Shown here in pieces: positions 120 through 22,330 of a stretch of DNA of 64,000 bases. The first letter of the stretch is position 1. Each line of letters starts with the position of its first letter. Source of the stretch: Tubulanus polymorphus (Eukaryota > Animalia > Nemertea); NCBI RefSeq assembly GCF_964204645.1, contig NC_134032.1, forward strand, positions 10,776,275 through 10,840,274, in the 5' to 3' direction. The notes below the pieces were generated by a model that saw only the letters and a list, made by a program, of their open reading frames with translations, was not told the origin of the DNA and did no database searches. The position numbers and the translations under genes are program-made.

Positions 120-305
120 GAACACACCCTCAGAGAGTCCATACATATCCTTGGAGACCCAATACATCCTCAAAGACTCCAAACACACCCTCAGAGAGTC
201 CCAACACACCCCCAGAGAATCCCAACACATCCTTAGCGTCCCAATGCATCCTCAAAGACTCCACACACACCCTCAAAGAGTCCCGCCAACACATCTTTAC
301 AGTCC
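120..305. repeat. Degenerate ~20-21 bp minisatellite (aacacaccctcagagagtcc), about 9 copies
   Basis: Visible periodicity; last unit overlaps the exon 9 stop codon. Confidence 0.8.
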
Positions 306-580
306 GAGATTCATAGTTTTCAGTTCGTCGAGAATCTGCGAATGGTTTCGTCTCATGTGAGCTTTAAGCGTATCGAGTCGCGTGTACTGAGTAGCGCAGA
401 TCGCGCATTTGAACGCTTTACCCATCTGCACGTGTTGTACGAGCACGTGGCGTTTTAAATTGAAATTGTTCGCGCACACTTTATTGCACAGATGACACAC
501 GAACTTATCCACTCCGCCGCCGCCGTTGTTGTCGTCATGGAAATGACCTTGAAGTGGAGCGAATGGATTAAGAAGGTCAC
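297..580 (-). CDS. Alternative terminal exon 9 (most distal in window) of multi-isoform C2H2 gene; 2 C2H2 fingers
   Basis: Acceptor tcattccAG (582-581), phase 1, in frame with ORF 297-512; CHLC..RHVLVQH and CAIC..RLDTLKAHMRRNH; stop at 297. Confidence 0.85.
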
Positions 581-1407
581 CTGGAATGACAAGGAAGAGA
601 TAAATTTAGAAGAAAACAACAACGGCTTTTATTGTCTGCTCGCAATGGAAAGGGTTAACGATCAATAGACATTTTCAATATTCGAAAACTCTCAATACAT
701 TTGCTTCATTCTTTTGTAATTCCAGGTGACCTTCTAGTGTTGCTAGGATTTAGAATAGGCTAAAACAATTTGACTACTGGAGGTAGTTGCCCAGTAGCAT
801 CAGAGAAAACCCTCAATTCACTAATGTACCTAAATCCAACACTCTCAGATGAAAATGATACTAAGAAGGATGACTGTTCCGTATACACCATGCACCTGAA
901 CCTGTGCTGTAAGTCTGGTGTTTTGTCGGTCAAGAGATATTTCGGACAAGATTTTGTGCTCTAAATTCTATCCACAGAAGTTCAAGAAGTTGAAAAGACA
1001 ACAAATGAAAACAGAACGACACAATTTAGGAAAAATGATATAAAAATTTTGATTATTATTATTGGGCGAATAGTTTTTACAAGTAAAATTATTTTTCGGA
1101 GAATGACACGATTTAAACTTTATCGATATAGAATTTTCATCATTATTAGTCTCAAAGTTTTACAAATACAACAGCTTAATTTGGATGACCAGGGACTGCC
1201 CAGATATCTTTGAATTGATTAAAATGCGAAAATAAGATAATAATAGTTTACACGGTTCCAGGTTAAATGGACCAAATATTTCATCCGAATTAAGTAAAAA
1301 TCCGGATTAAAAAATTTGAATCAAGCAAGTTCAACAACTGTACAACTGTCATTCTTCGGTGGATATTCATTTCGTTTTCGATTACGGAGTCTTTTTCGAT
1401 CGTTCGT

Positions 1408-1880
1408 TCAATTTTGAAAGTTGTGCATTCCGACGAGCGGAGGAACGGCAGGCGGAGGATGCTTCGAATCGACGTGCGTTTTGAGGTTATCCGACCGCGA
1501 GAAACTACGCTCGCAAAACCGGCACTGATATCGCGTTTTGTCGAACATGTGAACGCCGGCGACGTGTCGATTCAGATTGAACAATTTACTGAACAATTTA
1601 TTACAAATCCGACAACGGAATCGCTTCAGGGCCGGCGGCGCTCCTCGACGACCGTCGCCGAACACCGGCGATCTGATGAACTCGACTTTATATAAAGATA
1701 AGTCCGACGACGTCGACGCAGCGGTCGGCGGATCGAGGCGACCGCGCTCGACGGGATTCTGTAACGCCTCGTACGGATCCGGCGCGCACCGATGACTCAT
1801 CGTCAAAGAATCTTCGTCCTTGTAATCCGTAGTTTCCAGATAAATGTCTGCGTTGTTGCCATGGTGATTGGCTCTCAGTC
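1408..1880 (-). CDS. Alternative terminal exon 8; 2 C2H2 fingers (Ttk/Fru-like HX4H)
   Basis: Acceptor catttttcAG (1882-1881), phase 1, open into ORF 1408-1806; CRIC..NLNRHVAGVH, CRFC..RSDNLKTHVDSKH. Confidence 0.85.
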
Positions 1881-3189
1881 CTGAAAAATGTCATATGGAA
1901 ACTACGGATTACTGAAATGCGTATGGCTGCGTGTATTCACTACGTGCATTAGGAAAAATAAAACATTACATGTGTATGAATATAGAAGATGGCTGTCTCT
2001 GCAAGTCCTCATATGACATCATCAAATTTTCATTTAGATCTATTAAAAATCTTAAAACTATACATTTTTATATACACATTGCTTTCACAATTTCCAAATA
2101 CAATTGACTAAGATTGGTGGATTTTCAAGGGCGGATCCAGAAGCCAATTTTGAAGGACTTGTCACATCCCAAAAAGGCACTTTGCTGTCCACAAAGGCAA
2201 TGTAGGGGCACTACTGCACTGAAATTCACCAATTATCTCTATTGACAAAAAAGAAAACAGCACTCGAAAAATTTGATGTAACTGTACAAGTGTCGAAGTC
2301 TTCCTGGATCCAACCCTCAATTGGACAGTGGTTATACAGTGGTTCATTCAGATTTGACTATAAAAACTTTCCCCCTTCATAGTAACGATGAATAAGAAGG
2401 GATTATGACATTTGTGGCGGAATAATTGACTATCGAATGCAACCATATTTTCTAAGAGGTTCTCCAGTGTTGGGAAATATAAACTAGCATCTAAAACCTC
2501 AGATTACAAAGAAACGGAGAGTTCGAAATCCTCTTGAGCCAAAAGCCTTTCTTCAAAGGAAAGGATGAGACCGACGAATCAACCGATACCGAATTACGCG
2601 ACACAGAAATATCAACATAACATGAAATATGTTTCTCGATGTGGTTGGATTTATTAAAATTGTTATAAACAGTTTTACACATGATATTTCTACAACATTT
2701 TAATAGATTTCCAGAAATATATATGAACCTCGTAAATACAATAGATGCGGTACAGCTGCTATGGTCAGTGGGGCCGCAGTTTCCTAGAAATATTCGAAGT
2801 ACACAAACCCGTGGGCGGGATTTCCCGGCAATTGCACCGTAGATAAGCGTTTTAGAAGCGGTGATCCAAACATTCAATTGCGATCCCGACACAGACAGAC
2901 CCCACCAGAACCACACACGCGCAATTATTCTATTTCATTCTATTACAATATCGACGATTAAAAGTGATTAAAGCATCACGAGCTATTTACAATTTAAAAT
3001 AATCATTTCTACATCCATATCGAAATAAACGCTTCTTATTCACTGAAAAACGTTCCCTCATTAGTAGCTGCAGTGGTTCCTGGTAAACCACCTCCTCTCA
3101 ACCTCACTCAGTTTGTCCAAATTAGTCAAGGTTTACTGTATGATACTACTTATGTATGACTCCTAGTAGTTGCGCCCAGTAAATGCTCG

Positions 3190-3328
3190 GATGTTACTTC
3201 TCCCCAGGGAGAGGATTAATACATGAATAGATAATAGGTAATAATACCAAGTTTGGAGCGCATTTGAACAGACTCTAGATTGGATACCTGCGCTATATAA
3301 ATAACAATTATGATTATTATCATCATTA
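3190..3328 (+). mobile_element. 3' fragment of the SINE family seen at 11332-11646
   Basis: ttctccccag...ggatacctgcgctata...(att)n tail shared with that copy. Confidence 0.6.
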
Positions 3329-3498
3329 CTTCTGTTTTATCAATATCAATTGCACACTATGTATTAACCATCAGGCTTTCACTCAGAAAAATACAAAGTT
3401 CATATTTGTCAACACAAATTTTCAGAATCGACTTCTTTTTTCCACTCCCACCTATCGGAAGGCATCAGAGTTAAGGGCATTCGGAAAGTATAGTCGAC

Positions 3499-3570
3499 CA
3501 CCTCGGCTGGGACTTGAACCCGGGTCTTCAGTTTGCAAGACGAATGCTCTACCAGTTGAGCTACCCGGGC
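3499..3570 (-). mobile_element. tRNA-derived SINE head / pseudo-tRNA
   Basis: A box TAGCTCAACTGGTAGAGC and B box GGTTCAAGTCC, but acceptor and anticodon stems do not pair. Confidence 0.65.
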
Positions 3571-3751
3571 AGATTGACTACTGATATTTCCTGCGATATT
3601 CCTTGCTTTCCTGGCACTGGCTAAGATATCTAAATTATATCTACCCGTACAACGATCCCTGAATGCCTTACGTGTATAAAAATCTGAATTTGCCGCGCGC
3701 AAAATATGAGGCAACCGTACGCACTGACGGGCACAAAGCCCTGAGGGATTT

Positions 3752-3990
3752 CTATGTGGGTAACACCGGATAACCGGGCGGCAATTCGAACCCGTGTCGC
3801 AGCCGGATGTGACAGCGTAACGCGTCTTTGCGATTGAAACGTTTTTTGCACACCATACACTCGTACGGTTTCAGTCCGGTGTGTATTAACAAGTGTCGGT
3901 TCAGGTGGCCCGTACGCGAGAAAAACTTCCCGCAAACGTGACATTCGAGAGACGGCGCCGGCGCTGCCCGAGCCGGCCGAGTGACCGCAT
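3752..3990 (-). CDS. Alternative terminal exon 7; 2 C2H2 fingers + HGFELP tail
   Basis: Acceptor ctattttcAG (3992-3991), phase 1 in frame; HTGLKPYEC linker; RKDALRCH. Confidence 0.88.
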
Positions 3991-4214
3991 CTGAAAATAG
4001 CCAAAAATGCGTAGAATTAGATATGTCTTTCGAGCGAGGAATTTCGGGTAAGTTTTTATTTTGGTCCCCCGTTAAAAGATTCGGCGGAAACCCGGCCGGC
4101 GAAAGCACGTGCGCGCAGAACCACGTTTTCTTTCAAAATTCACATTTTGGAGATCGAATGAAATAAATAAATAAAAAGTAATAAATAACTCGAAGAGTCG
4201 CGTCGAAATTTTTT

Positions 4215-4630
4215 TTATCCTTCGTCGCTTTGATTCAACAGCGGATCGAATAGATACGCCTGCTCGTCGCCGGTGACGCGCGCGGCAGACGGATCGTCGC
4301 CGGCGCCGGTGACCGTCGTTGTCGTCCGCCGCTCTCCCTCGTTATCATCGGCCGCCACCGTCAGCGGATATCGCCACGGCAACTCGAACCCATGCTGCAA
4401 ACGGATGTGGTTGCGCACGTTGTCGCGGCGATTGAAGCGTTTTTTGCAGACGATACATCCGTACGGTTTCTCGCCGGTGTGTATGAACGTGTGACGCGCC
4501 AGGTGGCGCTTCGTCGAGTAACATTTGCCGCAAATCGGGCAACTAAATTCCGAGTTCGTTCGCCGCCGGGCGTTGGTGTCCGCGATGCGCCGCTGTTGTC
4601 CCGCGAACGGCGTCGTTGTTGTCGGGGCCC
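4215..4630 (-). CDS. Alternative terminal exon 6; 2 C2H2 fingers + HGFELP tail
   Basis: Acceptor ctttttcAG (4632-4631), phase 1 in frame; HTGEKPYGC linker; RRDNVRNH. Confidence 0.88.
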
Positions 4631-4959
4631 CTGAAAAAGCCATACACAAAAATTACTGGAAAATTTTCTAACGAAGTTCAATCGCAGCCCGAAAAACCGG
4701 GTTCTTACATCTTAAACATGTACATAGCTTTTCAGGGCCCCGTGAACAGCAATTCTGGGGTTTGAACCCGACGCTCATAATCCACTACGACACAAACACC
4801 GGACATTTACATCCGTCTGAATACAAGATGTTTTTACGCTCCCAAACACTGGTTAGGTACTTAAGTAGACATTTACATAGCTTTAAGGTCAATTTTAGAC
4901 AAATTTCGTCACTTCACGGTCAGCTGGAGTAACTCTGCACTTTAACTGATTCGCCAATC

Positions 4960-5170
4960 GAAGGTCAATTTAACTCGCGAGTCGTTTCAACGTCACTTTA
5001 TCTTATGAGTCGTTTCGAGGTTGCTTTAACTTGTGAGTCATTTCAAGGTCATGTAGATGAGAAGTTTCATGGTAACTTTCTCTTACGAGTCATTTCAAGG
5101 TCAAGGTCGCTTAATCTTATGAGTCAGTACAAGGCCATGTAAACTTATGAGTAATTTCAAGGTCACTTAA
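4960..5170. repeat. Degenerate ~29-bp minisatellite (cttatgagtcatttcaaggtca...) in 3'UTR of exon 5
   Basis: About 7 units of gagtc(a/g)tttcaaggtc. Confidence 0.7.
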
Positions 5171-5204
5171 ACGCGGACGTAGTTTCATGATTTACGCGCA
5201 AGTT

Positions 5205-5506
5205 TTAATCGTCGGCGGGTTTCAACGACCAGCTGAGCGGCACCTCGAACCCGTGAGTCAGTTTTATGTGGTGGCGCACGTAGTCTTTGCGGTTGAAGCG
5301 TTTTTTACAGACGATACACTCGAACGGCCGGTATCCGGTGTGTATGATCAGGTGACGCGTCAGGTGACTCGACGACGAGAACGTTTTACCGCAAACCGTG
5401 CACGGGTTGCTACGCGGGTGATAGTTGCTATGACTACTAACGGCCTCCGACTGACGACCAGCCGACGAGCGGGCTGAGGCGGAGGACACGATTCGAAGAT
5501 CGAATT
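5205..5506 (-). CDS. Alternative terminal exon 5; 2 C2H2 fingers + HGFEVP tail
   Basis: Acceptor ttttctttcAG (5508-5507), phase 1 in frame; HTGYRPFEC linker; RKDYVRHH. Confidence 0.88.
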
Positions 5507-7828
5507 CTGAAAGAAAAAATCGAAAAATGCCGATAATTACTACGAACCAAGGATTGCCCTCATATCTTTCTTTCATCCAGTGCCGGAAGGAGTTATATCC
5601 AGTCAGTTTTCTATGCTTTACGGTCCTAGCATACCTTACAACCCCAATGCAAACTTCGGATTATGTAACTAGCGGTCGCTATCAATCTAAGCTCACTACA
5701 GTTTGGTCTTAAGCATTTTCGCAGTGTCCGCCATCTTGGAATTACAGTGACCGTGTTCAGTTGCCTGGTTCACCATTTTTTGTTACTAAATGACAATTGG
5801 TTTCACTTAGTTTGCGAATAGTCGACTAATTCCAAAAACTGATCATTCATTCAAATGTGTGATATACCAACATACTAAAGGTTCTTAGTCAAATTTGTCT
5901 TAGTTTTCGCCACTGTTTCTGGCAATGTCTGTGGATTCTACGGTCATTGTGGTAGAATTCTTCATACTCGGGTCATGAGATGATTAATCGAAACCCTCTG
6001 CCGCTTGGCAAGAAGTTCGATTTCAGGATTGCCCCAGTGCTTGCACGTTGAGCCTCAGCCAAAGAGTCGGATCGCGACAAAAGGGGTGGCACATCTAGTC
6101 TTAGATCGAGGTCGATGAAGCTGCCGAGCTAGATGCAACCTTCTAGATGTTCTCACAGATATTAGACGGATAGGACTAATATTTCCGAAGAATGAAATTG
6201 GAATTCGTCGTCGGCTTCGGAAATTGAAACAATTCCTTCTCGAAAGATGTTCATCCTACTTTCCCGAAAACGACATCAAATATCAAATACGAAAAGCCAA
6301 CTTACGTTTTTTTATCTATCAATTTCGATATCGACTTTTTTATTCATCCATTTATTACACATTTTTACACGAATTACTTCGAGGTTATTTTCATCCGTTT
6401 ACAAAAGTAAATAAAAATATATTCATATACATATATGTATATATACATAAAATATCAATTACTACTAGAACCTGGTATAATATTCCTCTAATTAGTCGTA
6501 GTTCGTTAAGTTTAATGAACTAAATATTCTCTTAAAATTTTCACATCTTGAATTGATATCTAATATGACTGTACATAGAATATCCGGATTATATATATAT
6601 ATATATAAGTAGTATACACGAACATTTCATAAATACCAAAGTAAAAATGTTAAAACTGTTCAAAGCACTGAATTGTCAGTATCCGGGGCAGTTCCACAAA
6701 AACGAAAAATTTAACACTTAAATCGATTCAATTTCTTCACTATCTAGTTAATCTTAACTTTTTGAGTGCGTTTACACTGCAGTACGGCGTATATATCGGT
6801 GATGTACTTCACTAATACACCGCATTATGGTGTTTCGATGTAATAAGTAATTCGTTTCGTATCTCCATTAAAAGATGGCAGCACCCGTCAAACTTGGTGA
6901 TATATTAGTAACCCAGTATGGCGGTCAGATAGTCAGCACAGAAAGGGTTTTATCGATTTAGCAGTTGAACTTTTTTATGAAACTGGGTGCCGAACAAACT
7001 TGATCATTGTCGGTTCATAATAAACTGTATATCCAACATACAAACATTAAAAAAAACAAATCATAAAATCCTAAAACACAGGTTTTGATATACATTTTTT
7101 GTTGATGAAAAAAAGTCTAATAAAATGAAGTCATCAGTTGCCGGAACTTGACACAAAGAATCCTGCTTAAATCCTGTAGTTAGGGGCCGTCAATGAAGTA
7201 TGTTTATGCAAAATTAGCCTATTTTAAAGCATCAGAATTTTTGCCTTGCCTCCCTGAGGATGCATGGATGCATGCAATTCCAACATATAATGGTCTATTT
7301 GACCCCTAACAGTGGACGGCTAGTAAAATTAAAGGGATACTTCGTATCGAAAAAAAAATGCAGACATTCTGGTTTACATTGCATGCCCCCCTCAGGGGCG
7401 ATCTGATTAACACAACCACTCCCCATCCCCCGCCCCTGACCATAATATGGTCATGGATATGTGCAAATTTCATTTATCCGGGTATTTCATTTTCTTAAAA
7501 CTATTCTATCGTTTCATGGAACCTCGCTAAAACAAATTACCCTTTTTCGTCCCAATATCCGACAAGTACCATGATACCAATTGTAATTGGGCTAATGAAC
7601 TATCACTTAAAAGACCGATTCCCTGAATTCAAAATAAAGTCTTCAATAAGAAATGGTCATTAAAGCTTAACGTGATTAATTTGCAGACAAGAACTTTAGG
7701 AGTCCGGTTTAAAAAGGTTCCACATAGGTATCCTAAAATGCAGTTAAATTCGAATGAATCTTGTAAAGGAGTATCGGCCAATAGGAACGAGCGTTACTGG
7801 CGGTATCAGCCAATAGGAGCGAGCGTTA

Positions 7829-8082
7829 CTACATCGGCTGAATCGAGTATCCGAACGGCAAATCGAAGCCGTGACAGTGCCGCACGTGGCAGCGCAGTTT
7901 GTCTTTGCGCGCGAAACGTTTTTGACAGACCATACATTCGAACGGTTTGACTCCGCTGTGTATCAACAGGTGGCGCTTCAAGTTATACGCGTTCTTAAAA
8001 TATTTACCACATTGCGAACAGTATTGTACGACCGAGCCGGACGAGGTTTGACTGCCGAACATACAGGACTGCGGCTGTGCCC
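7829..8082 (-). CDS. Alternative terminal exon 4; 2 C2H2 fingers + HGFDLP tail
   Basis: Acceptor tgccgtttcAG (8084-8083), phase 1 in frame with ORF 7829-8062; HSGVKPFEC linker; RKDKLRCH. Confidence 0.88.
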
Positions 8083-9352
8083 CTGAAACGGCACAAAAAT
8101 ATATAATAATTACTAACTGATCAACATTATTAATTAATTACTATTCGGTGCTAATAAACTACGAATCTACTACGCTTCGTTTAGGGTTAAAAAAAAAAAT
8201 ATGGCTGCAAAGCAGTTATAATGGGTTTTTCTGCGTTGCCGGTTCACAACGAGGTAAACAAAGTTTCATTGGAATTGCGGCCATTATCAGTACAACGAAT
8301 AGGGTTTTTTTGTAGGAGCGCCACCTAGGGGTCAAAACACGTATTATACGTGCGGTGCAATACGGGTTACTAAATACAAAGTTTATTCATCTATACACTC
8401 CCCTGGTATAGATAACGATTTTCAAATTCTTTTGATTATAATAGCTACGTAATCGTGAACATCGACCCAGTACGGGGAGTTGGAAAAAAAATTGAATCGC
8501 AAGTGAAATCTGCGACTCGTGGAAATTGGACGAAAACATTTTGCAAATGAGCAGGCCCGATCTCTCAACGAGTTCATAATAGCTAAACGATCAAATATTT
8601 TTTGCTCCCATTGCTGAATACGGAATCATCATACAACGCCGCCGTACGAATATTGATTAGACTTTAGCTTATCTAATGAAATGCCCATTAGGAATGTTTC
8701 GGATATAAAAATACTGGACTCAGTCGCACGGTCATGACTTAATGCGCACAAGTTGTCGTCTTCAAATCACAAGACTTAAATCGTAAGTAGTTAGATCGGT
8801 TATGGATGTAACTTCTTAAATTCAAGCCATGACGGTGTAACTTCGCTAGCTCAATTCACGCATCTTAATTACGATGATCACTTTTGGATTTCTAACGGAT
8901 AAAAAAATGGCCAGCCAGCAGTCCCGAAAAAAGCGGGTTTAGCAGTCAAAGGATTAATCAATATCAATTATACAAAAAATACCGAATAAAAAAATGCGCT
9001 CGGCAATAAAACTTAACAACATAGAGTTCTTCGGCTAAAATTCTATCACTCGTAACATTCAATTGAATTTTTGATTTATTCAATAATGGAAAGGGCCAGC
9101 CAGCAGTCCGAGAATTTGCAAGTTTAGCAGTCAAAGGATTAATTGATATGTTATCGATAACACAAAATTTATACCAAATAAAAAAACGCTCGGCAAAAAT
9201 GTACAAAACACGAGATCTCCTAAAATTCAAGAACTTTTTCAGAAATTGTGGATTTATCATATCAGTCAATAAAACATGAGGCCCAACCGGCAGTCCTGAG
9301 AAATGGTGGAATTCGAGACGATGGGTTTATCGATTGGAATTCGCGAGCGGAA

Positions 9353-9906
9353 TTATTCAGGGTTAGCCGGTACGGGATAGCCCTGCGGCAGCTCGAATCC
9401 GTGCCGCGTGCGTATGTGCACGCGCAGGTGATCCTTGCGTTGGAATCGCTTCTTGCACACCATGCACTCGAACGGTTTGACGCCGGTGTGAATCAGCGAG
9501 TGCCGCGTGACGAGCTGTTTCGACGAGAATCCTTTACCGCACGTCGTGCACGCGTACGACGTCTGAATCGCGAACACCGCGCCCGAGTTCGCGCCGCCAA
9601 CCTTCGTACGCGCGTTACCCTTACTCGCCGGCGACCGCGTCCCGCCGCGTCCTCGACCCTTCGCGGCGACCGGCGTTGACCGATTCCGTCGCGTCGGCGT
9701 CGACGTCAAGTTGTAGTCGTCGTAATCCGGTTGCCGGTAGTCGGTCGACTGGTCGATGTTCTCGTACGCGAAGTAGTCGGCGTTACCGGGAAACACGGGT
9801 TGTTGTTGCTGTTGCAGATGACCGCCGTAAATATCGTCGTCGAAGTCCGGCGGCATCTGCTCCTGCAGTTGTTGCTGCTGTTCGATTTTCAGGCCGTCAG
9901 GTAAAC
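9353..9906 (-). CDS. Alternative terminal exon 3; Q-rich linker + 2 C2H2 fingers + HGFELP tail
   Basis: Acceptor tgccgtttcAG (9908-9907), phase 1 in frame with ORF 9353-9856; HTGVKPFEC linker; RKDHLRVH. Confidence 0.88.
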
Positions 9907-10479
9907 CTGAAACGGCAGAAAATAGAACAGGTTACAACAACAACTTACACGTCACCCGAGGACTTGGAAACGTCCGAGCAACCCTTTTCGCTCGTTTACG
10001 CGACTTCGGGCGTCTGGTTTTATTACCGCGGGAGGTTTAGAAAATCACGTCGCGAATCATAAAATCTTATCGAATTTCGAAATACACCGCGATCACGTAA
10101 CAATCAGGTACCGGCGACACAGCGCCATCTGGCAACCAGCCTACTGGATGGATGACGCGCGACTTAATAACAGCAGGTCTTACGCGCCGAATAAACGGTG
10201 GCCGTCGTGATCTCACGAGAGTCCGCGCGATAAAAATGCCCTCTTTTCTCTGCTGCTTTTATTCCACGAAAATATCTTCAATTTTTCCGTCCTCGCAACA
10301 TTTGCTTGAAAGCTCAATACAGCATTGATAAATCCAACAAGACAACCACCTAAACATCCATCCATGCTTACGGTGTGGATCTTCACCAAACAAGGTCGTA
10401 CGTGAACCGCCCCCAATGATTAAGGTGCGCAGGGATAACATCCTAATGGAGTCCAGTACGGGTTAAAACCCTCTTAGTA

Positions 10480-10945
10480 GGTTGCATGGGACTATCCCGG
10501 CTCACTTTGAACACAGTAAGGGGTTCCCCACGTAGTAGACACGACAGGACTAACCCCGCTCACTCGGTTGACTGTACAGGACTAGCCCTGCTTATTGAAT
10601 AGACTGTACGAGATAAACCCCGCTCACGGACAGTACAGGGTTCCCCTCGTAGTAGGCTGTACGGGACTAGCCCCGCTCACCGAGAAGACAGTAAGGGGTT
10701 CCCCTTGTAGTAGACTGTACGGGGATACCCCGCTCACTGAGTAGACTGTACGGGGATACCCCGCTCACTGAGTAGACTGTACGGGGATACCCCGCTCACT
10801 CAGTAGACTGTACGGGGATACCCCGCTCACTGAGTAGACTGTACGGGGATACCCCGCTCACTCAGTAGACTGTACGGGGATACCCCGCTCACTCAGTAGA
10901 CTGTACGGGGATACCCCGCTCACTCAGTAGACTGTACGGGGTAAC
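10480..10945. repeat. 31-bp minisatellite GTAGACTGTACGGGGATACCCCGCTCACT(G/C)A
   Basis: Seven near-perfect units 10710-10926 plus degenerate units to about 10480; first unit is the end of exon 2 CDS. Confidence 0.95.
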
Positions 10946-11239
10946 CCTGCGGCAACTCGAACCCGTGACACGAGCGTATGTGAACGCGCAGGACGTCTTT
11001 GCGATTGAAACGTTTTTTGCACACCATACACTCGAACGGTTTCAGCCCGGTGTGTATGAACATGTGACGCGTGACGAGTTGACGCGACGAGAATCCCTTC
11101 CCGCAGGTGGCGCAGTTGTACACGACGGCCGTCGAGTATCCGCCGGTCGCCGCCGCCGCTGAACTCGAGGAGGTCGGAAGCTTCGTCGGTGTTTTGTTGG
11201 TTTTCGTGCCTCTTCGGTTATTTTGGCGACTGCCGACGC
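10920..11239 (-). CDS. Alternative terminal exon 2; 2 C2H2 fingers + HGFELP tail
   Basis: Acceptor tgccttttcAG (11241-11240), phase 1 in frame with ORF 10920-11123; HTGLKPFEC linker; RKDVLRVH. Confidence 0.88.
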
Positions 11240-11646: not shown

Positions 11647-12561
11647 CTTTGAGGGTAAGTAGATTGTCACCGATTCATACACCATGGTGCAGTCCATATA
11701 TTTCTATGATTTTTTCTTTGTGGGAGGCGGTCACAAACCTACAAGTCCGAGCACAGGAATATTCTAATCCGACAGAAATATAGCGATATAAGGAGACGGA
11801 GCCATTTCTTACTTTTTGTTGGCGGGAATATCACGAGGTCTCCTAACGTCGTGGATACAATCATTAGAAATGCCGGGGATGTATTTGGCAGCTATGAAAT
11901 GTTATCGACGTTTGGGGAGGGGATATTCCTCGTCGTAACAACTCTAACAAAGACCATAGACAAACCGTCTTCAAGGGGCGGATTCAGGGGGACAGGTGAG
12001 ACTTGTACGAGTCCATCTTTTTTCGAGTACCCTTTCTCGTCGTGTCAACAAAGATAATTGGCGCATTTCAGTACGGCAGTGCGCCTTATATTTCCCTCGT
12101 GTGACAAGTCCTTGAAAATTTGCACCTGGATCCGTGCGCACTCTTGAAATTGCAAAAACAAACAAACGATAAAATCGTGAAAAATTATATTATATAAATT
12201 TATCTTTGATTATCGTCGAATCAGCTAAACGTACATACATCGTACTATAACGATATATCCATACATAGAATATTTGATTATTTTTTTCCCTCGATTTTAA
12301 GTTAATGTCGATTACAACGATTTCTGAACTGGAAGAATTTGCCTACTTTTTGCCCACGCGGCAAACACAGCCTGCCGGCATATACAACAACAAAAAACCA
12401 CTCGCCCAATTTTCATCAAAATTTTCTTTAAAAACTCATGCACAATCACATTAAAACAACATATTTACGCTAAATCATCTCGTTTAAGTATCTTGACTGC
12501 ACGCGATTCTAAATTACACATTTGACCAGAGGTCCCTCCCAGATATCAAAATCAGGTAAAA

Positions 12562-12810
12562 GGTGCGATCACACGTAGACGATTTCGCCCAGGTCAAACT
12601 GGTCCGGACTAGGCCGAATTAAATTTGGCCCGTGCTCAAGTAGAGAGCGCATTCACGTAAATGTAAATTAATACTTTGTCGCAGTTACTTCCAGAACTGG
12701 TTACCATTCAGATGGAGTAATTCAAAAGATACCTAAGTTCGGCACGGACATCTACAATACCAGCCAATTTGACCAGGGTAAGAAATGCTTACGTGCCATC
12801 GCAACCAAAG
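12562..12810. mobile_element. MITE-like element (gcgatcacacg termini), related copy at 44917-45105 in opposite orientation
   Basis: Shared aaatttggccc and gagcgca motifs; imperfect TIRs. Confidence 0.55.
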
Positions 12811-12944
12811 TCTTAACCGTTTTAAAATAAATGCAAGTTCATTTTTTACTGACTAAAATATTACCAAATAATATCTCGACCGCGTAACTATAGCTCATGA
12901 TCACAGAAAGCCTATCGATTCTTATGGAATTAAAACGAACAACG

Positions 12945-13183
12945 AACTGATCGGTCAAACCGCGACGAATTTTAACATCTAGCATCAACGGTTACCTCGA
13001 AAATTTAATATCTGATTAAAACAATTCAACTAAAACTACAGATTAACTGGAATAACTTTCTAGAACTGATCCGCCAAAACCACGGCGAATTTTAACATCT
13101 AGCGTTAACAGTTACCTCGAAATATTCAATATCTGATTAAAACAATTTAACTAAAACTAACGATTAACTGGAATAACTTTCTA
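12945..13183. repeat. Two-copy ~119-bp tandem duplication
   Basis: aactgatc...gaataactttcta occurs twice. Confidence 0.8.
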
Positions 13184-13599
13184 CAAAAAAATTGCGTCTC
13201 ACGAAACATTTTCTCTTTTTGAGAAAAGAAAAACACGTATTTAAAAACTAGCAAACGTAATAATAACATAAAACATCAAGCCTTGCAATCGAGCAAATTT
13301 TTATGATAAAATCAAATTTTGATTCAGTTAAGTTCACGCCGACACATTTAGCGTAGCCCGCTAAAATTGAACAGGAAAATCAACCACGCCATAACACACA
13401 CACAACCACGCATACTACACTGTCCATGAAATGCGCTGGTAATTTCAAAAATTTTCATAAAAAACAAATCACCGCGAGACATTTTCCCCATGATTTTTCG
13501 GTCTGACGGGTATAAAAAAATAATCACATTCTGGTCGTAAATCATGTAAAGCTCTTCGTAAAAAACATCAATGCACAGCGTACGAGAGCGGAGCAAAAC

Positions 13600-14052
13600 T
13601 AGGGAATCCCCCATGTATCAGGGAATTCCCTCAAAAATGGGGTTCCCGACTTACACCCGGGAAATCCCTACACTTAGGGGTTAAAGAATACCCCCTCCAC
13701 AGAACCAGAGAATAACCTTTCCATCGGGTATTCCCTAAAAAGGAATTCCCAGCCAATACCAGGGTATCCCCGCGACGAGGCACCAAACAGCGATCAGTCA
13801 GTGAACCAGAACGTATATCAGGGAATTCCCTTGAAAACAGGGATTCCCCAGCCAACACAAGGGAATCCCCTGCATTGAGGCATCAAACACTGATCGGTGC
13901 TACGTGATAACGTAAAAAAAAACACACAATGAATCGTTCAGACATGATACTCAGCAAAGCCGATGAGAGAATCTCTCCATACACCTGGAAAGAGCCTCCT
14001 ATCAAGGGGAATCCATCGTATCAGGGGGGGGGGGGGTGATCTGGGAGTTCCA
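13600..14052. repeat. Degenerate repeat of (a)gggaat(t/c)ccc palindromes in 3'UTR of exon 1
   Basis: More than 10 gggaatccc/gggaattccc motifs. Confidence 0.6.
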
Positions 14053-15038
14053 TTAGACTTGCAGCATATCCTTATGCATACGATTCATGTGCACCTCGAG
14101 ACCGGACGTGTTGCGGAAGCACTTCGTGCAGAAACGGCAGCTGAACGGCGCGATGCCAGGATGCGTACGCAGGTGCCGCGTCAAACTCGACTGCACCATG
14201 AACGCCTTGTCGCAGAACTGACACGCGTAACGCAGACGCGGATCGCGCGCAGGCGACGACGACGCCTTCACGCCGTACACGAGCTGCTGCTGCTGCTGCG
14301 CGACGGCCCCGTCCGCGTAGACGTCGTACTTAACGTCGATATCCGGGAGTTCCTCTTTATAATCCTCGTCGTCTTCATCATCATCGACGGCTATAGGCAC
14401 GGGATCACCGTCATCATCATCGCCGTCGATTACATCCCCGTAATCGTACGCGTAATCGACCTTCTGATTACCGCCCGAGGTCGTGCGACCGCGTGTGTTG
14501 TAAATGCGACTCGATGCCGACCCTTCGACCTTAACACCGAGCGAACCTTCGACCTTCACCCCCGACGACGATCCTTCGACCTTCACCCCTGACGACGGAG
14601 GCCGATATTTCTGCGGAGTCGTCGCGACGTTATTGTTGTGATAACTCGAACGGTTTATGACGGGCGGTTTTACCGGAGTACGCGCCGCCCGGCCCGGCGT
14701 GAGACGATGCGGGGAACGGGCGATACCGCCGGGCGTACGAGGAGACCGCGCCATTGCCTTCGACGGCGATGGATCGGGCGTCCGAAAAATCTTCGCGTCC
14801 GCCGGCGTTTTGCGATCGTCGTCGACCGCCCAATCGTCCGTCGACGGTTTCGCCGGTGACGACTGCACGTTTTTGATCTCGTGTCCGGTGATGCCGTAGT
14901 TGATGAACAAGCGGTCGCCGAAGTTCGGCGGCGTGCTCTCGTCCTCGACGATCTCGATGTCGTTATCGACGTCCGCCACCGGTGGCGCCGGCGGTTTAGC
15001 GTCTTCCGTCGCAGATCCCTCATTCCATCCGGCATCAT
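14053..15038 (-). CDS. Alternative terminal exon 1 (proximal); long S/T-P-rich and acidic linker + 2 C2H2 fingers
   Basis: Acceptor tattttgcAG (15040-15039), phase 1 in frame with ORF 14053-14979; three VKVEG repeats; CQFC..RHLRTH, CRFC..HMNRMH. Confidence 0.88.
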
Positions 15039-15105
15039 CTGCAAAATACGGATGGAAGAGGAGACTTAGAACAGAAGTTGCTGATGATGTTGTTGATGGC
15101 GGAGG

Positions 15106-15136
<31 letters not shown>

Positions 15137-16283
15137 TATAAATTAAAATCATTCCTTTAGATCATCTTTTGTTAGTAGCAACGGTAGCAAATATACATCG
15201 TTAATAGAAGCACCGTTAAAAAACTAGAAATAGACGGAAAATCTTGAAGTGCGAGACCTGATTTTCCATACTTTTTCCATAGCCATAGAGGAAAACAAGC
15301 AACAAAATTTCCATTGCCTTTTAAGGGCGTGCAAAAAAAATCGATTCCCATTTTTGAAAACCTTAGAAGACCCGTCCGACCCCTGTAAACCAATGAACAA
15401 CAAATCTCTCAGATAAGTCAGGGAAAAGAGGAGGATGAACAAGGGCAGATCCGAGAACGAATTTAATCATAGTACCAACAGTAAAAAGGCTGGTACTATT
15501 CAATCGAAAACGAGATATCCTCCGAGAAACACGAACAACTGCGATTATACCCGAACTCGGTGTAGGGTGATTCGTTAATGCAAAATCTAATGCGTCCGGC
15601 GCTACTATAGAAATAATCCTATAGATACTTAATGCAGGTAGGTCGAATACTATAGAAAAAATCCTATAATTAATACAGGTAGGTCGAACCAAGATGAAAA
15701 CCTGCAAAAGACATCATAAACGGGGATGAGAAGATTTTCAACCTGAAATCGTTCACCTTACGCCTCTTTAGTCTATCCGTTTTAACAATGACCCATCCGT
15801 CAAATTCTGTCTTTTAATTGACTACAATCTCTCAAACTCCACCAACTTTATGCACCAGTCGATATCTATGCTTATATACGCGCGTTCAAATTATCGAGAG
15901 TTCATTCCAGTTAATCGTATATGCAAATTCCGCACTGAGTTTCGTTAGAATTGAGGAAGATTTTAAAAAGTCGAGTAAATCTCGCGATTTCAACCGATAA
16001 CGCGTCGCTTTGTCGCGAAGAAGCCGTCGTCTGCCGCTGTCACACGGGATTAATACGCAACGCGCACATCCGTGATCGCTCCTTGATCAGTATTGTATGG
16101 TAGCGAACGATTCTCATCGTCGCTCCGACCTAGTGGCCGTGTGCGCACGCGGATCCAACTCGTGGTCGTCATGGCAACGATATGTCAGTCGCCTCTCTCT
16201 CTCTTTGTCTCAAGGGAGGCGTTCTTTGATTTTCCACCAGAACAGGTTAAATATCGCATGGACATATCGTATCTGATTAAAAG

Positions 16284-16315
<32 letters not shown>

Positions 16316-18595
16316 GGGGGTTCAACAAACATCGACCCACAATAAGACTAGAGTGCGAAATCGCGAATAACGTCTTTCGAAAAAATAGATACCTTTTTCT
16401 TGTTTCTGCTGAGCTTAAAAAGTTGACCCTGCCGGCCGCCTATATACCCCTGTATACATTACTTTCTTAAAAATTATGATCGAGCTTATCATAAAAGACG
16501 CGCAAGTCGTTATAGAAATGAACTGGTGACAAACTTCATTGCGGTTTACGTAAGTGACCCAGTCCATTAGGAGAAACTTTAAGGTATCATTTTTTTAGCC
16601 AGAAAAACGATTTTCAAGCCTTGAAAAATCGTTTATAGCGACTAAGTGATAATCCAGTTGTGTCCATCTGAAAAAATTTCACACGGGAAAAAAATATCAC
16701 GAAACTTCCACCACCATTTTGAAAACCAGCGAAACGCGACTCTTTCACTGTTTTCCGGACGACTTTCCCAGTAAGAGAAATGGTTCATATATTTTTACAA
16801 GTACTACTACACCAGCCAGATTTTTCTATCATTTCAGGTTGCCAAATAACCTGAAATATCTAAATAAATGCAGTGCAGGAACCCATTTCGGAAAAACTGA
16901 AATGGCCAAGGACTTCGGGTTGAAAATTTTTTAACCCGTTAAATATGTTGCGTTTTCGAACGCATTTCGGAACCAGGTCCACCGATATCATGACACTATA
17001 TGCCACGTACCAGTATCGAAGCTAGACATATTTCACTTAAATGACGGAACCTTGTGTTATAAATAAATAAGACCATCATCCCATATAAGATGAAATAAAT
17101 CTACTTTTTAACTGGACACGACAAACAATATCGGTTCATCGTTCCTCCGTATATATACCCTGCATATATAGATCGACACGTGCACGCTGGTCTCGGACGG
17201 TTCGACCGTACAAACTCGTCGAAATATATCTTACCGTTAATTCCCGACATTTCTCATTAAAAACACGCAACATATGTCTGTGAACCAAATGCCCAATGAG
17301 AATGAGAGTGAGAGGAAACAAGGAATGGCTTTCATAAACGAGAAATGAGGCATGGCTTATTCAGTTGTTCAGGGATAAGGGATGCGTTAAGGATATCTTA
17401 TCAACCATTTATAAGTTATAAGTCATGCGACTAAGGCAGTCTCAACCTCTACCACAGACTCAAATCTATGAATCATATTCAGATTAAGGATAAACAATTA
17501 TCACTAGACGAAATTATCTACCCTCGATGATTCACAACCCGTAGAGGGGCTGCGGCCCACCTCGACAGGGATTCGAACCTGATGGCATATCTACACTCAG
17601 CCACGGCGTGAAACCCTGCCGCACTCGACCGAGTGCGCAGGTACATAAGCAGATAATGTCATAATTGGCCAAACAGAAATCCCATAATTATTTAAGCCCA
17701 GGTTTTCTGATAGTTAACCCGTCAAATTTGCTTTCAGCGATAATACAACGAGCAATCTGATCGGTGCGACAGGGTGAAAAGAGAACGCAATAACTCGAAA
17801 TGGAGTGCCACACAACGCCACCAAGCAAACTACAATTACGCACAACAACCGATTTGCAAATAGCGATTATTATCATCCATCAGAATCGAATTAAGTTTGT
17901 TGATATTTGAAGATTTGTCTTTAACAACTGAACTTTTGACCTCCCTCAATGGTGCTTACATAGGCCCGCATCTGAGTGTGGCCACTTTCCGGCCATTTAC
18001 AAATCAAAAGTTTTCAATGTGATCAAACTAAATTCCCTGAGCTAACCAGTTAAGGAATACACGCGGTCAATAGCTCTCATCCAAACTCCCTCAGTTTTCC
18101 AAGGTTTTTGAGGTCTGCGGCCACCCAGTTATTAATAAGGGCAGGCTTAAATCACTCAGCCACTACCCCTATGAGGAAGGTCAGGACCGTTGTGTTAAAT
18201 CTTGAAATATCGACTTGAATATACTTTCGTGAGTGTTGTTGTCTGATCTAGGCGCATATTATTTCTCAACGGATTTTTTCGAAATTCTGGCATTTTGTAG
18301 GATAATAATCACATCTAAGCAATTCGAAGTGAGTCGTACCAATCGTGCCGATTTGAGGTTCAACAACCGATTAACTCGGCCTTAATCAAATTCACTTAGT
18401 ACTGGTTATGCTCCATGTAGCCTGGCTTCTCACTGGAAAGAACAGAGCTACAAAATACTCAGGAGCAATTTTCAGAGCACTATACGCAAAATCAGAAATC
18501 AAATAGAGACGTGTTTTTAATCTTTTCAATTATCGTCGGTTTTCATGTCTCATATTCTCAAATCCCAGTCATTGTGCTTTTACATTCAACAACAG

Positions 18596-18740
18596 GGCCG
18601 GTTGCATAGTAACGGCTTAGACTTAAGACCAGTCTTAAGGCCAGTCTACCAACTTGGTTCTATAGCCAATCTAACACCTTAAGACCAGTCTTAGAATTTA
18701 AGACCACTTTGGACTTAAGTCACGACTGTGCAACTGGGCC
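18596..18740. mobile_element. MITE, Harbinger/Tourist-like; same family as 41908-42045
   Basis: TIR ggcc(g/a)gttgca; flanked by cag on both sides. Confidence 0.75.
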
Positions 18741-19060
18741 CAGGACTCATTGCCACAGTCATGAGTTCACTATCGCGTTGAAATTATAAGCTATCACAAA
18801 AGGTTCAACTCCGACTTAAAATTTATTCAATTTCTTCATAAATCTAGTGTATCTTAAACGGATTTAGGAATTAGCTATTTTAGTGAAAATGGTCTCCCCG
18901 AGTCAGATCTTATCTCGGATCCGTGGAACTAGATCGAGAGGAATATATTTTCAACATCTCTGGTTATAAATTTTGAACCTCCCGCGCGATTAATACGACT
19001 CGTCCTCAGCAAAACGACGACGAAGAATCGAACGAAGGAAAATAAATCCGAGAAACTTAC

Positions 19061-20119
19061 CGGTCGAATGCGAACTAGGACCGGGCATCGGTTGACCCGG
19101 CGCGCCATGGTGGTGATGATGATGCCCCATCAACTGATTCTCGTAGCCGGCCATCATGCCCGGTTCGACTTTGATAATCTCGATCGGATCGTCGATATCC
19201 TCTTCGCCGTCGTCGGCGTAGTTATCCGCCGCCGTCGCCGACGAGTCGTGGTGATACTCCGGTTTCGGTTCGAATATCTCCGTGTTTTGTAACGGCGCCG
19301 ACACGTCCGTTGTCTCGCGGCTATCATCGCCGCCGCCACCGGTCGGTATATACGACTCGTAGCTACCGTCCACGGGCGGCGCCACCGTGCCGTCGTCCGT
19401 CCGTCGTTGCTGCTGCTCCGGTTTGACGTCCTGCTCGGAGTTCTTAATGCTCAACAACGTCGACTCGATCTCCTCGGTCGTGAACATTTCCGCCGACGGC
19501 CGCACGACGCCGCCCGCGTCGCCGACGCCGTGCGCGCCGGACACGCGGTGCTCGCCGTCCTCGGCGGCCGGCGATACTGACGGAATAGACGACGGAATAT
19601 TTGCGGCCGCCGCGTTCGGCGACGACGACGAAGAATGATTAGGCGAAGACATATTGTTACTGAAAGACAACTGAGGCCGGTGTTTCGGACTCATCATTTG
19701 TTGGTGTTGCTGCTGATGCTGCGGTGATGGCATCGACATGCCGTGTTGCTGCTGCCCGGTAACCGGCGACATCGCCATTTTTTGCGGTGTCGACGACGGA
19801 GATTTGCGCGGAGTCATTTTTTGCGGCGTCGTCTGTTGTTGCATGCCGCCCGGCGAGCGATTCGCGTACGGCTGATGGAGCGGTCGCGGTCCGACGGCGC
19901 CGCCGCGACCACCGAAGTTCATTTGCGCGGCGCGATTCTGCGGGGGAATCGACGACATCATCGCCGGCGCGGTGCCACCGCCTCGCCGACGTTTCACGGC
20001 ACGTAAAACGTTCTGCGCGACCGCTTGTTTGCGGTTCATGTCCAGGCGACGTTTCGGCGAGTTCTGCTGGTGCGGCATCGCGACCACCATGCAATCGTCG
20101 TCCGCTAATCCGCCTTGAC
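19061..20119 (-). CDS. Shared coding exon 2 of the C2H2 gene (basic NLS-like segment, Q/P/S-rich disordered region, IKVEP motif, His run)
   Basis: Acceptor cctcgacAG (20121-20120); strong donor CCG|GTAAGT at 19060, phase 1; matches ORF 18990-20090. Confidence 0.9.
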
Positions 20120-20697
20120 CTGTCGAGGGGCGAGAGAAAACAATTCATGTGTAATAGGACGCGACTTTGACCGTATCCAGCGAGGGTATTAGATTTTTCT
20201 TTGGGATACGTAGAACTCAAATGACAAGGTGGCCACTTATTTGCAAATTCCCTGATTTTTCCTTGTTATAACAGAAATTTCCTGAGTGAATCCAAAGAAT
20301 TTCTTCGTTTAAAATGCCGATAACAATTCATTCATTTTTCATTGAATCACGTATTGATAAAGAAACAAGTGGTCAATAATATATAGGCCTATCTTAATTC
20401 CCAAAGTTTTCTTATAAGTTTTTTCAGCAAGATTTGTCCCTGAGTTTTTTAATGTGAATCTGATTCCCATGAGTTTTCTATAGGTTTTCCAGGTCAGTGG
20501 CCAGGCTGTTTAATCGAAGATTCAATTTTGGTGCGCTATCCAGTGAGAAGGTACTATATTTTTTGTCAGGAAAGTTAAAATTGAAATGTAACCATCCCAA
20601 AAGAAATTTCTTAGCTTAGAGGAATCCTGAGTTCAGTTTCTTTTCCATGAAAAGAATTTGACCACTATATTCGTTTTCATGCAATAGTTATACGTAC

Positions 20698-20851
20698 TTT
20701 TAACAGTTTGTCTCCGCGACGACCAACGAAACCACGTATTGTCATCGACCGTGACGACGATTTCGTCGAGCCAATCCAGATGGCGCCGCAAACAGAGTTT
20801 CAGCTCGTCCTCCCGGACGTGGAGCCCGACTCCTTCCATGAACAACACCAT
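20698..20851 (-). CDS. Shared coding exon 1 of the C2H2 gene: 51-aa N-terminal module MVLFMEGVGLHVREDELKLCLRRHLDWLDEIVVTVDDNTWFRWSSRRQTVK
   Basis: NAGNAG acceptor TAGCAG at 20898-20893; in-frame TGA upstream of ATG 20851; donor A|GTACGT at 20697, phase 1, joins next exon in frame (TVK-S-QGGLADDDCMVV). Confidence 0.8.
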
Positions 20852-22099
20852 GACTCTTTCCTGAGTGTCTCTCGATCAGATGTAAATCTGGCCTGCTAGA
20901 AAAATATCAATACTCAATGAAAGCTCATGACTAAAAAGGAAATTAGCGCTCCAGGCCCATATTTTCCATTGTCGGTCATTTAAGTTTCAAGTGTTCAGAG
21001 TTAAAATTTGTTCATTTTCAGTGTTTGGCTTCGACAGTCCACCCTTTTTCTAAACTTTTAAGCCCTAATAGGTATTTTCCGAATTATTTGATATGGTATG
21101 ATCCTGTACGAACCTACCACACCTGCTTGAAGTGGTTTTGATTTTGAAAATGGAAATGGAATTTAAGCCCAAGTTGGGCGAAGTGTTGAATTTAAATAAT
21201 TATTCGCTTAAACCAAAGCACGCAAATAGAGAGAATGCATCCTCCCCCAGCAAGTATTCGAATTCCTGTTGGCTACGAGACACGCCACGGTACGAAACCC
21301 TGCCACAATAGACTGAATGTGCTGGATCACTCCAAGGATAAACAGTGATCAAATATTGGATTTCTATCTATCTTCTTCACTGAGATCCAAGGACATCAGT
21401 CGATCTGTCTTGTCAAACTTTTGCATTTGCAAATTTTGATATAGAAAATACTAAGTAACCATTAGCAACTAATCCAAAAAGCTCTACCGATTCAATTTTA
21501 GTAGTTGAATAAATCTGTCTAACCCGTATAATATGTAGGCTGGTAGATGAATGAAGTAGTTCCACAAGTGAATTTCATATGATAAAATTTATTAAAATGA
21601 AAGCACATTTCAACCGTCAAAAGCTATATCATCAAGTAAACAAACCAAATATTTTGACAAATACTACATTCAATAGCAACTGAAAATATGAGTTCTTAAC
21701 TCTATTTGAAACTGGACCATCCGCGAAGTCAATTAAAAAAATTAAGTTTCATAATAGGCCTAAAAGAAAAATAATTCATCATGCCTAAACTTGTACTGCA
21801 ATAAATAATTTCAAATTCTAAGTTATAAAATTCTAATGATCAATATTCCAATAACCCGATTAGAGCCTTTCAAAAACCTATTGAATTCGACATCAACAAA
21901 GAGGTTCACCTAAGGTTCATCGATTCAGGGTTCAATAATAATGGCGTCGACACAATGCACCCCGATGCAGCAACTAGCAGCCATGATGGCGAACCCAGAT
22001 GTCGTTTAGCCCCAGTTCAAAGCGCCCACTTCACACCCGATTTACAACCTTTTCGGCCCAGAATAAATCGCGAAATATGCATTAAATGATTCTCAATAC

Positions 22100-22330
22100 C
22101 TTCGACTGCGTAACTTCAATAATCGGGATCCGTTTTCGTCGATCGATCGCGAGATATTCCGGTTAACTCGAGCGGATAGTTCGGCAGATGCTGCGCGCCG
22201 TCGACCATAATTAACATGGAGCGCTCGTTCGCGGCGTCAAAACCTAGTACATCAACATAGGCGAAAAGACGCCGCGCACCGACGCGCCAGAACATCAATT
22301 AAGTCGCGTCTAAAACCAGAACTCGCGCTA
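22100..22330 (-). promoter_or_regulatory. Probable promoter and non-coding first exon of the C2H2 gene
   Basis: CpG-rich patch with TCTCGCGA-like motif near 22147; donor AAG|GTATTG at 22099; lies between the MED30 3' end and coding exon 1; 5' boundary uncertain. Confidence 0.5.

Follow-up and report, generated by a model that had tools for sequence, protein, structure and literature searches.

The gene LOC141910263 of Tubulanus polymorphus, a species of the phylum Nemertea, is very probably a transcription-factor diversification locus, in which a constant 5′ part is combined with a single last exon, any of nine that encode zinc fingers or, probably, a tenth that encodes a homeodomain. The gene lies on the minus strand of the window, the 64,000-nucleotide stretch of DNA analysed here (NC_134032.1, positions 10,776,275 to 10,840,274), and all coordinates given below are window positions on the minus strand unless otherwise stated. 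The constant 5′ part consists of two coding exons, which encode a 51-aa module and then a basic nuclear-localisation-like motif with a low-complexity acidic region, and its single phase-1 donor at 19061 would be spliced to one last exon, each supplying a different C2H2 pair, its own stop, and its own 3′ end. Because every variable exon is terminal, their use would be mutually exclusive, and because the constant 5′ part would be joined to one variable exon at a time, the resulting isoforms would have the effector half in common and differ in DNA-binding specificity. A preliminary description of this DNA had proposed that the zinc-finger last exons are used in a mutually exclusive way behind the shared 5′ part of one gene, apparently outside the insects; the gene structure is supported by phase, stops, gaps, a RefSeq junction, RNA-like contigs, and a paralogue, and the host is a nemertean.

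The database model of the gene, RefSeq XP_074657091.1 (P0001), is a 732-aa protein composed of the module exon, the shared exon, and ZF1, and its junctions agree with those predicted from the sequence, that of 19061 to 15038 exactly. RefSeq contains no further isoform with the N-terminus of LOC141910263, and no contigs encoding P0001 were found in a search that excluded the records of the window's own genome. The exons were used singly as search queries, and P0001 was the one full-length protein analysed. Judged by sequence alone, the CpG-rich region at 22100–22330 is a candidate for the promoter and a first exon without coding sequence, with a candidate donor (GAAG/GTATTG) whose last exon base is 22100. 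The first coding exon (20698–20895), delimited by the sequence and the N-terminus of XP_074657091.1, follows an acceptor AG at 20897–20896, carries the start ATG at 20851 and the coding region of the 51-aa module (20699–20851), and ends in a phase-1 donor (AAAA/GTACGT, last exon base 20698). The shared exon (19061–20119), which is contained in P0001, has an acceptor AG at 20121–20120 that allows an in-frame join to the upstream coding exon, and its donor (ACCG/GTAAGT) is in phase 1, the last exon base, 19061, being codon position 1. In the preliminary description, an ATG at 20090 preceded by an in-frame stop was taken as the start; this stop is intronic and the upstream coding exon joins in frame, so that the shared N-terminus described at the time was incomplete, the real first coding exon and its conserved module having been missed. 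The shared exon encodes a basic motif, KRR..NR..VAQNVLRAVKRRR, together with an acidic region rich in Q, S, and P; it matched no Pfam family, and it retrieved no match as the query of a word-based protein search.

A six-frame motif scan of positions 1–23000 detected exactly nine pairs of C2H2 fingers, all on the minus strand and at the places previously noted, and each of the nine exons contains two fingers of the C-x2-4-C-x12-H-x3-5-H type (Pfam PF00096). The exon ZF1 (14053–15038), assigned from the sequence and the RefSeq junction, comprises 328 codons with two C2H2 fingers and its own stop. The other alternative last exons were delimited by motif scan, acceptor, and open frame in the case of ZF2 (10920–11239), ZF4 (7829–8082), and ZF5 (5205–5506), with the addition of Pfam for ZF3 (9353–9906) and ZF6 (4215–4630), of contigs from run X2 for ZF7 (3752–3990), and of both for ZF8 (1408–1880), while ZF9 (297–580), the farthest zinc-finger exon, was assigned from the sequence, Pfam, and a contig from run X3. 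The five exons submitted to Pfam matched zf-C2H2 with 36.9–41.1 bits against a cut-off of 25.2 (E = 1e-9 to 1e-10), and the base-contacting residues vary from exon to exon. A word-based protein search with the ZF2 exon retrieved no match. Internal ATG codons are present in some of the zinc-finger exons.

Each of the nine exons is preceded by a pyrimidine-rich AG; the coordinates first given for these acceptors are those of the G, and the exons begin one base lower. When the donor G is prefixed, all nine read open to their own stops in phase 1 and in frame with the single donor at 19061, an agreement that is inherited among tandem duplicates and does not count as independent evidence. A scan of 22 kb for phase-1 acceptors (score of at least 9, at least 60 open codons) recovered the ten DNA-binding exons and five other sites, three of which reside inside DNA-binding exons and two of which open AT-rich, non-protein-like frames. 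In ZF6, an AATAAA lies 155 nt past the stop, and the next acceptor is 223 nt from the stop; ZF5 has neither AATAAA nor ATTAAA ahead of the next acceptor.

The tenth of these exons lies outside the window. The array had been suspected to extend to the left, and it does so by one phase-1 last exon encoding a homeodomain (window −1646 to −1357, chromosome C8 10774628–10774917, minus strand), which is likewise open from the donor at 19061 and puts the end of the array 1.4 kb left of the window; no further C2H2 exons were found in 40 kb. The exon was identified from the sequence and by Pfam PF00046 (75.8 bits, E = 2.2e-21, cut-off 22.9), and it has weak, partial coverage in run X2. Its sequence context suggests that it is probably used as the tenth last exon of the locus, and all ten last exons would then join the donor at 19061. 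It could also terminate a homeobox gene distinct from LOC141910263, a serious alternative to which we give somewhat less than an even chance: its closest relatives (43–55% identity) belong to a cluster of ordinary homeobox genes on C6, it is absent from all other module arrays, and no junction into it was seen among the displayed contigs. However, the exon has a phase-1 acceptor, follows ZF9 immediately on the minus strand, and has no ATG ahead of the homeodomain, while the 1.65-kb gap between ZF9 and the homeodomain exon contains no plausible first exon and has no X2 coverage, and the next same-strand gene beyond it is an unrelated vWA-type gene.

The design of the locus recurs elsewhere in the genome. 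The module gave 42 six-frame matches in T. polymorphus, corresponding to at least 36 copies, with about 17 of the 42 within C8:11.41–11.65 Mb, and for 88 of the top 141 ZF2-like matches a module lies upstream on the same strand. The same anatomy is seen in the paralogue at C8:11496543, where a module exon and a shared exon ending in a phase-1 donor precede 36 zinc-finger reading frames, each closed by a stop of its own; for 30 of these frames the best acceptor is in phase 1. The shared exons of the two loci are homologous (E = 3e-10). Sequence comparison thus places LOC141910263 in a family of similar loci that number in the dozens.

The module itself is predicted by AlphaFold2, from a 23-sequence alignment, to fold into a β-hairpin and three helices (pLDDT 90.5), and a complex prediction with two module copies scored 0.30 against a mark of 0.32, a value that speaks neither for binding nor against it. 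It had no Pfam match even at E ≤ 1, no credible match in a profile search of PDB sequences (best E = 0.82), no Foldseek match in the PDB at E ≤ 0.001, and no credible match in the wide VIA-align search (best Z = 3.1) or in the Atlas shape search, and the ESM Atlas feature search returned unnamed or irrelevant clusters only. A likeness to the KRAB A-box noticed by eye was dropped, given the empty Pfam result and a model consisting of a β-hairpin and three helices. Among 1.84 billion representative proteins, the module found 14 matches, 13 of which are T. polymorphus proteins or are 65–72% identical to the module copies of this genome (five are named T. polymorphus); the remaining one, a 3026-aa bacterial Ig/fn3 repeat protein (P0012), was judged spurious. 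The module therefore appears to be a previously undescribed, lineage-restricted domain, no other organism having been found in that set, and it may serve as an interaction or effector domain.

The isoforms could arise in another manner, in which the variable exons are separate precursor RNAs, transcribed from internal promoters, and the shared 5′ part is trans-joined to them, as happens with Drosophila mod(mdg4) and to some extent with lola. The layout is like that of known trans-spliced loci (PMC11426971; PMC13490949), and the paralogue array is strongly conserved just upstream of its acceptors; conserved intron motifs are reported to play a part in the trans-splicing of mod(mdg4) (PMC13490949). 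However, all exons of LOC141910263 are collinear on one strand, for which ordinary cis-splicing is enough, inter-exon gaps as small as 223 and 573 bp offer little space for additional promoters and none for these together with first exons, and nothing points to internal transcription starts. Trans-splicing is thus considered unlikely, and cis-splicing from the shared donor is preferred.

Transcript evidence bears on whether the exons beyond ZF1 are used. Contigs from run X1 cover everything evenly, and X1 was read as DNA-like for this reason. In contrast, the contigs of runs X2 and X3 cover the ZF7–ZF9 exons with their 3′ regions and leave the upstream introns uncovered; those of X2 cover ZF7 with about 1.4 kb downstream, and ZF8 without the intron upstream of it. 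The distal exons are expressed, the RNA nature of X2 and X3 being judged from this coverage pattern. A 334-nt contig of X3 (record 18) matches the window at 531–581 only and continues with 283 unlike letters, the break falling exactly at the ZF9 acceptor, which is in use. The match runs one base into the acceptor AG, as it should when the last base of the upstream exon is a G, which is so for the exon ending at 19061; X3 also contains 58% of the sampled words from the shared exon. Contigs of run X4 read through the acceptors of ZF8 and ZF9 without splicing and may represent pre-mRNA or DNA. Of the junctions from 19061 to each acceptor, which the preliminary description had put forward as the check, direct evidence covers that of ZF1, from the RefSeq model, and the acceptor side of ZF9, from the X3 contig, whose donor-side letters were not displayed.

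These data also weigh against the view that the ZF1 isoform alone is real and that the other zinc-finger frames belong to small genes of their own or are duplicated exons in decay. The single RefSeq isoform and the internal ATG codons of some exons would fit such a view, which is nonetheless very unlikely, as the distal exons show RNA-like coverage without introns, the ZF9 acceptor is in use, most exons have no start codon before the acceptor and too little promoter space, and the identical design is seen again in the paralogues. Furthermore, the exons are old yet under constraint, with dN/dS values of 0.1–0.7 among the ZF2–ZF7 cores (0.15 for ZF2 versus ZF3) and dS from 0.6 to saturation. Serial splicing of the zinc-finger exons into one long multi-finger protein, as in some paralogue RefSeq models of 702–1577 aa that string several finger exons together, is rejected as extremely improbable, since every zinc-finger exon has, as first noted, its own stop, 6–58 codons past the second finger, and no decent phase-1 donor was found past the second finger in any DNA-binding exon of the locus.

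The acceptors of mutually exclusive last exons may themselves be subject to control. Unusually stable hairpins enclose five of the ten acceptors, with z values of −4.3 (ZF1), −3.8 (ZF2), −4.5 (ZF3), and −4.4 (ZF9), and the ZF8 acceptor resides within a stem of 17 uninterrupted base pairs (z = −3.4); such hairpins may damp or regulate acceptor choice. As a family-wide feature they were rejected, only 2 of 29 paralogue-array acceptors reaching z ≤ −3. A broader reading, put forward tentatively and short of being probable, is that nemerteans, or at least Tubulanus, evolved an independent lola-type system of dozens of loci with a new domain and up to about 36 exclusive two-finger last exons, that the present locus switches between C2H2 fingers and a homeodomain, and that hairpins tune its acceptors, the exon's first codons being paired with the pyrimidine tract and branch region. 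We know of no precedent for a gene that swaps zinc fingers and a homeodomain.

The closest known counterpart is lola, which, like fruitless, broad, and tramtrack, has shared 5′ exons, one donor, and an array of two-finger C2H2 last exons with their own stops, its isoforms having a common effector half and different DNA-binding specificity; 17 of the 20 lola isoforms have different C2H2 fingers, and the TTK-type BTB has been reported in arthropods only (PMC11426971). The TTK-type layout of shared 5′ exons and multiple DNA-binding last exons is found here, with junction evidence for ZF1 and the ZF9 acceptor, but the host is a nemertean and the 51-aa module of a β-hairpin and three helices stands in the place of BTB/POZ, to which neither Pfam nor fold comparison matched it. 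The absence of BTB noted earlier was borne out, as the window contains no PF00651 and, among the matches listed, the sole one on the 16.7-Mb chromosome is about 10 Mb off. Unlike that of lola, the T. polymorphus design recurs at dozens of paralogous loci, and one exon, probably used by this gene, encodes a homeodomain. The mod(mdg4) gene also joins a common 5′ part to one of many alternative DNA-binding 3′ exons, more than 30 of which, with DNA-binding or FLYWCH modules, have been described (PMC13490949, PMC11426971). It differs in its BTB domain, in FLYWCH in place of C2H2 or homeodomain modules, in variable exons on both strands, and in obligatory trans-splicing, whereas the exons of LOC141910263 are collinear on one strand.

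The KRAB (tetrapods), ZAD (insects), and SCAN domains are short, lineage-restricted N-terminal domains with their own 5′ exon, which are coupled to C2H2 fingers in tandem clusters. The module is likewise a lineage-restricted N-terminal unit, C2H2-coupled and tandem-expanded, as seen in its 42 matches and the 88 of 141 ZF2-like matches, but it has no sequence or fold similarity to these domains by Pfam, PDB profile, Foldseek, or VIA-align. The diversity of KRAB, ZAD, and SCAN factors is spread over numerous genes, in each of which a single exon carries a long array of fingers, whereas that of the module family would also come from many alternative two-finger last exons per gene. The clustered protocadherin and UGT1A loci, which do not encode transcription factors, combine constant 3′ exons with variable first exons that each have a promoter; their variable exons are also taken singly, in an orientation that is the mirror image of LOC141910263.

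The placing of alternative DNA-binding last exons in an array behind one common effector domain has been viewed as a peculiarity of the arthropod TTK-type BTB genes. If the present reading is correct, a BTB-less, convergent spiralian version spread over dozens of loci would show this design to be a general way in which transcription factors diversify in evolution, and would add a new family of zinc-finger-associated domains. The number of C2H2 factors in such genomes would be badly underestimated, since RefSeq lists one isoform at this locus against ten possible ones, and about 36 in the paralogue, and the locus would provide a second, independent system for the choice among many distant 3′ splice sites.

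The preliminary description had placed nine two-finger open reading frames on the minus strand, and a six-frame pattern scan of positions 1–23000 recovers the same nine C2H2 finger pairs and no others, all on that strand; zf-C2H2 was confirmed by Pfam in the five exons submitted. Each exon, from the proximal ZF1 (14053–15038) to the most distal ZF9 (297–580), is preceded by a pyrimidine-rich AG, as claimed, with pyrimidines making up 67–83% of the last 24 bases before the nine AGs, and the acceptor coordinates recorded earlier are those of the G of each AG. The shared exon (19061–20119) ends in ACCG/GTAAGT, and a codon begins at its final base, 19061, making this a phase-1 donor; once the donor G is prefixed, all nine exons are open to their own stops, in agreement with the proposed single donor. 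No decent phase-1 donor is found 3' of the second finger in any of the nine exons, which can therefore serve only as last exons.

Across 22 kb of the minus strand, a blind scan for strong phase-1 acceptors that open onto 60 or more codons without a stop yields ten DNA-binding exons and five other sites, three of which lie inside DNA-binding exons, while two open AT-rich, non-protein-like frames. The nine-exon array is therefore real rather than a product of chance, although tandem duplicates inherit their phase, and the shared phase does not count as a set of independent observations. The ZF1 exon is four times as long as the other variable exons, with long acidic runs and three tandem copies of a short SSGVKVEGS-like peptide repeat (14500–14600, minus strand). 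Within the locus, the stretch separating the ZF7 stop from the ZF8 acceptor contains a tRNA-Ala(TGC) gene or an element derived from a tRNA (3498–3571, minus strand), and the translation of a nearby reading frame (3409–3714) resembles a tRNA-derived repeat.

The in-frame stop reported ahead of the ATG at 20090 is present, but it is intronic, and the protein does not start there. An acceptor AG at 20121–20120 connects the shared exon in frame to an upstream first coding exon (20698–20895, minus strand), which contains the ATG at 20851, ends in a phase-1 donor, and encodes a 51-residue module. An exhaustive HMMER search with this module retrieves XP_074657091.1 (732 aa, "uncharacterized protein LOC141910263", Tubulanus polymorphus), which corresponds exactly to the module, shared, and ZF1 exons, including the predicted 19061-to-15038 junction. 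No other protein with this N-terminus is found in the 5.8-billion protein collection, and thus the proximal isoform alone is annotated.

The array probably extends to the left of the window, as had been suspected, by one homeodomain exon (window −1646 to −1357; same strand), while C2H2 exons are absent from the 40 kb fetched on that side. This exon has a pyrimidine-rich phase-1 acceptor, a Pfam score of 75.8 bits, and no ATG ahead of the domain, and the next same-strand gene beyond it is an unrelated vWA-type gene. Approximately ten homeobox exons with 43–55% identity to it are clustered on another chromosome (C6:5.35–5.63 Mb), which is likely its source family. MED30 was confirmed as a neighbour. 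Repeated, very similar vWA-like exons (MLPNSRPDVNNTVVLITDGE...) occur at 52263–52586 and 62032–62364 (plus strand) and in stretch L003 outside the window (1102–1473, minus strand); their presence on both sides of the locus suggests a putative tandemly duplicated vWA gene family. The open reading frame list also contains at least five clustered, intron-poor rhodopsin-type GPCR frames (271–374 aa) on both strands of 30657–40861.

RNA mapping, proposed earlier as a check on splicing from 19061, was approached in limited form with assembled contigs from runs X1–X4, compared with the most distal 6 kb (the homeodomain, ZF9, ZF8, and ZF7 exons). Coverage by run X1 is even in every bin, as expected of DNA. 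Runs X2 and X3 show an RNA-like pattern, in which the ZF9, ZF8, and ZF7 exons and the sequence downstream of each are covered and the introns immediately before the ZF9 and ZF8 acceptors are not. A 334-letter X3 contig matches only window 531–581, followed by 283 unlike letters, so that its break coincides exactly with the ZF9 acceptor that had been predicted. Its match reaches one base into the AG, which an upstream exon with a terminal G would explain; the shared exon has such a G at 19061, and the donor side is consistent with that position. Of the sampled shared-exon words, 58% are present in X3, whose contigs total 19 Mb. In X2, coverage of the homeodomain exon is only weak and partial, and X4 contigs, which may be pre-mRNA or DNA, run unspliced across the ZF8 and ZF9 acceptors.

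Folding of 150 nt centred on each of ten acceptors gave stable structures at ZF1 (z = −4.3), ZF2 (−3.8), ZF3 (−4.5), ZF8 (−3.4), and ZF9 (−4.4), in which the first exon codons pair with the pyrimidine tract and branch region; the remaining five range from −1.9 to +1.1. Only one of 50 random positions on the same locus and strand attains −3.4 (Fisher p = 2.6e-4). It is plausible that the predicted hairpins damp the strong proximal acceptors, letting the distal ones compete. Such hairpins are not general in the family, with z ≤ −3 in only 2 of 29 acceptors of a paralogue.

The module has no Pfam family, and neither sequence relatives in the PDB nor a match to its predicted fold were found. AlphaFold2, given a 23-sequence alignment, models it as a beta-hairpin followed by three helices (pLDDT 90.5), and two of its tryptophans are invariant. 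It is a putative interaction or effector domain, to judge by where it sits in the protein and by its pairing with DNA-binding domains.

The family to which the module belongs is the main new result of this analysis. Six-frame searching finds 42 matches in the genome, approximately 17 within C8:11.41–11.65 Mb on the same chromosome and the others on seven more chromosomes, and 88 of the 141 best ZF2-exon matches have a module upstream on their own strand. In the one paralogue examined in full (module exon at C8:11496543), the shared exon is homologous to that of the locus (E = 3e-10) and ends in a phase-1 donor, and the following 40 kb contain 36 zinc-finger reading frames with their own stops; for 30 of these frames the best acceptor is phase 1 and has the form tttgcag/G. 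At many acceptors of this array (stretches L006–L010, C8:11501353–11517041), the ~20 nt directly upstream are nearly identical (ggattctcatggctctttgcag); this could reflect either a conserved splicing signal or a strong branch point and tract kept through duplication. Of the 14 module matches in a set of 1.84 billion representative proteins, 13 are T. polymorphus proteins (five confirmed by name) or are 65–72% identical to the module copies of this genome; the fourteenth, a bacterial Ig-repeat protein, was judged spurious. LOC141910074, annotated with isoforms, has an isoform X2 (database protein P0013, C8:8307927) in which the module and a basic motif precede a non-zinc-finger C-terminal region without a Pfam family, and other types of C-terminus may thus also be joined to the module.

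The locus works in a manner like lola but lies outside the lola family, because it has no BTB domain and occurs in a nemertean; TTK-type BTB domains are reported in arthropods only (PMC11426971). The claims of BTB absence and of a non-insect host both stand. Among those listed, the only PF00651 match on the chromosome is ~10 Mb away. Full-text searching of the literature turned up no account of comparable loci in nemerteans or elsewhere beyond the arthropods. The locus also resembles the KRAB or ZAD families, in which a lineage-specific N-terminal domain likewise accompanies fingers in tandemly clustered genes, although its domain has no homology to theirs.

The ZF2–ZF7 cores show dS from 0.6 to saturation and dN/dS of 0.1–0.7; the exons are old and constrained. 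Residues at helix positions −1, 2, 3, and 6 vary between exons; in finger 2, R at −1 and D at 2 occur in eight of nine exons, and positions 3 and 6 are variable. Given these differences, distinct DNA targets are expected, and different isoforms should bind different DNA sequences.
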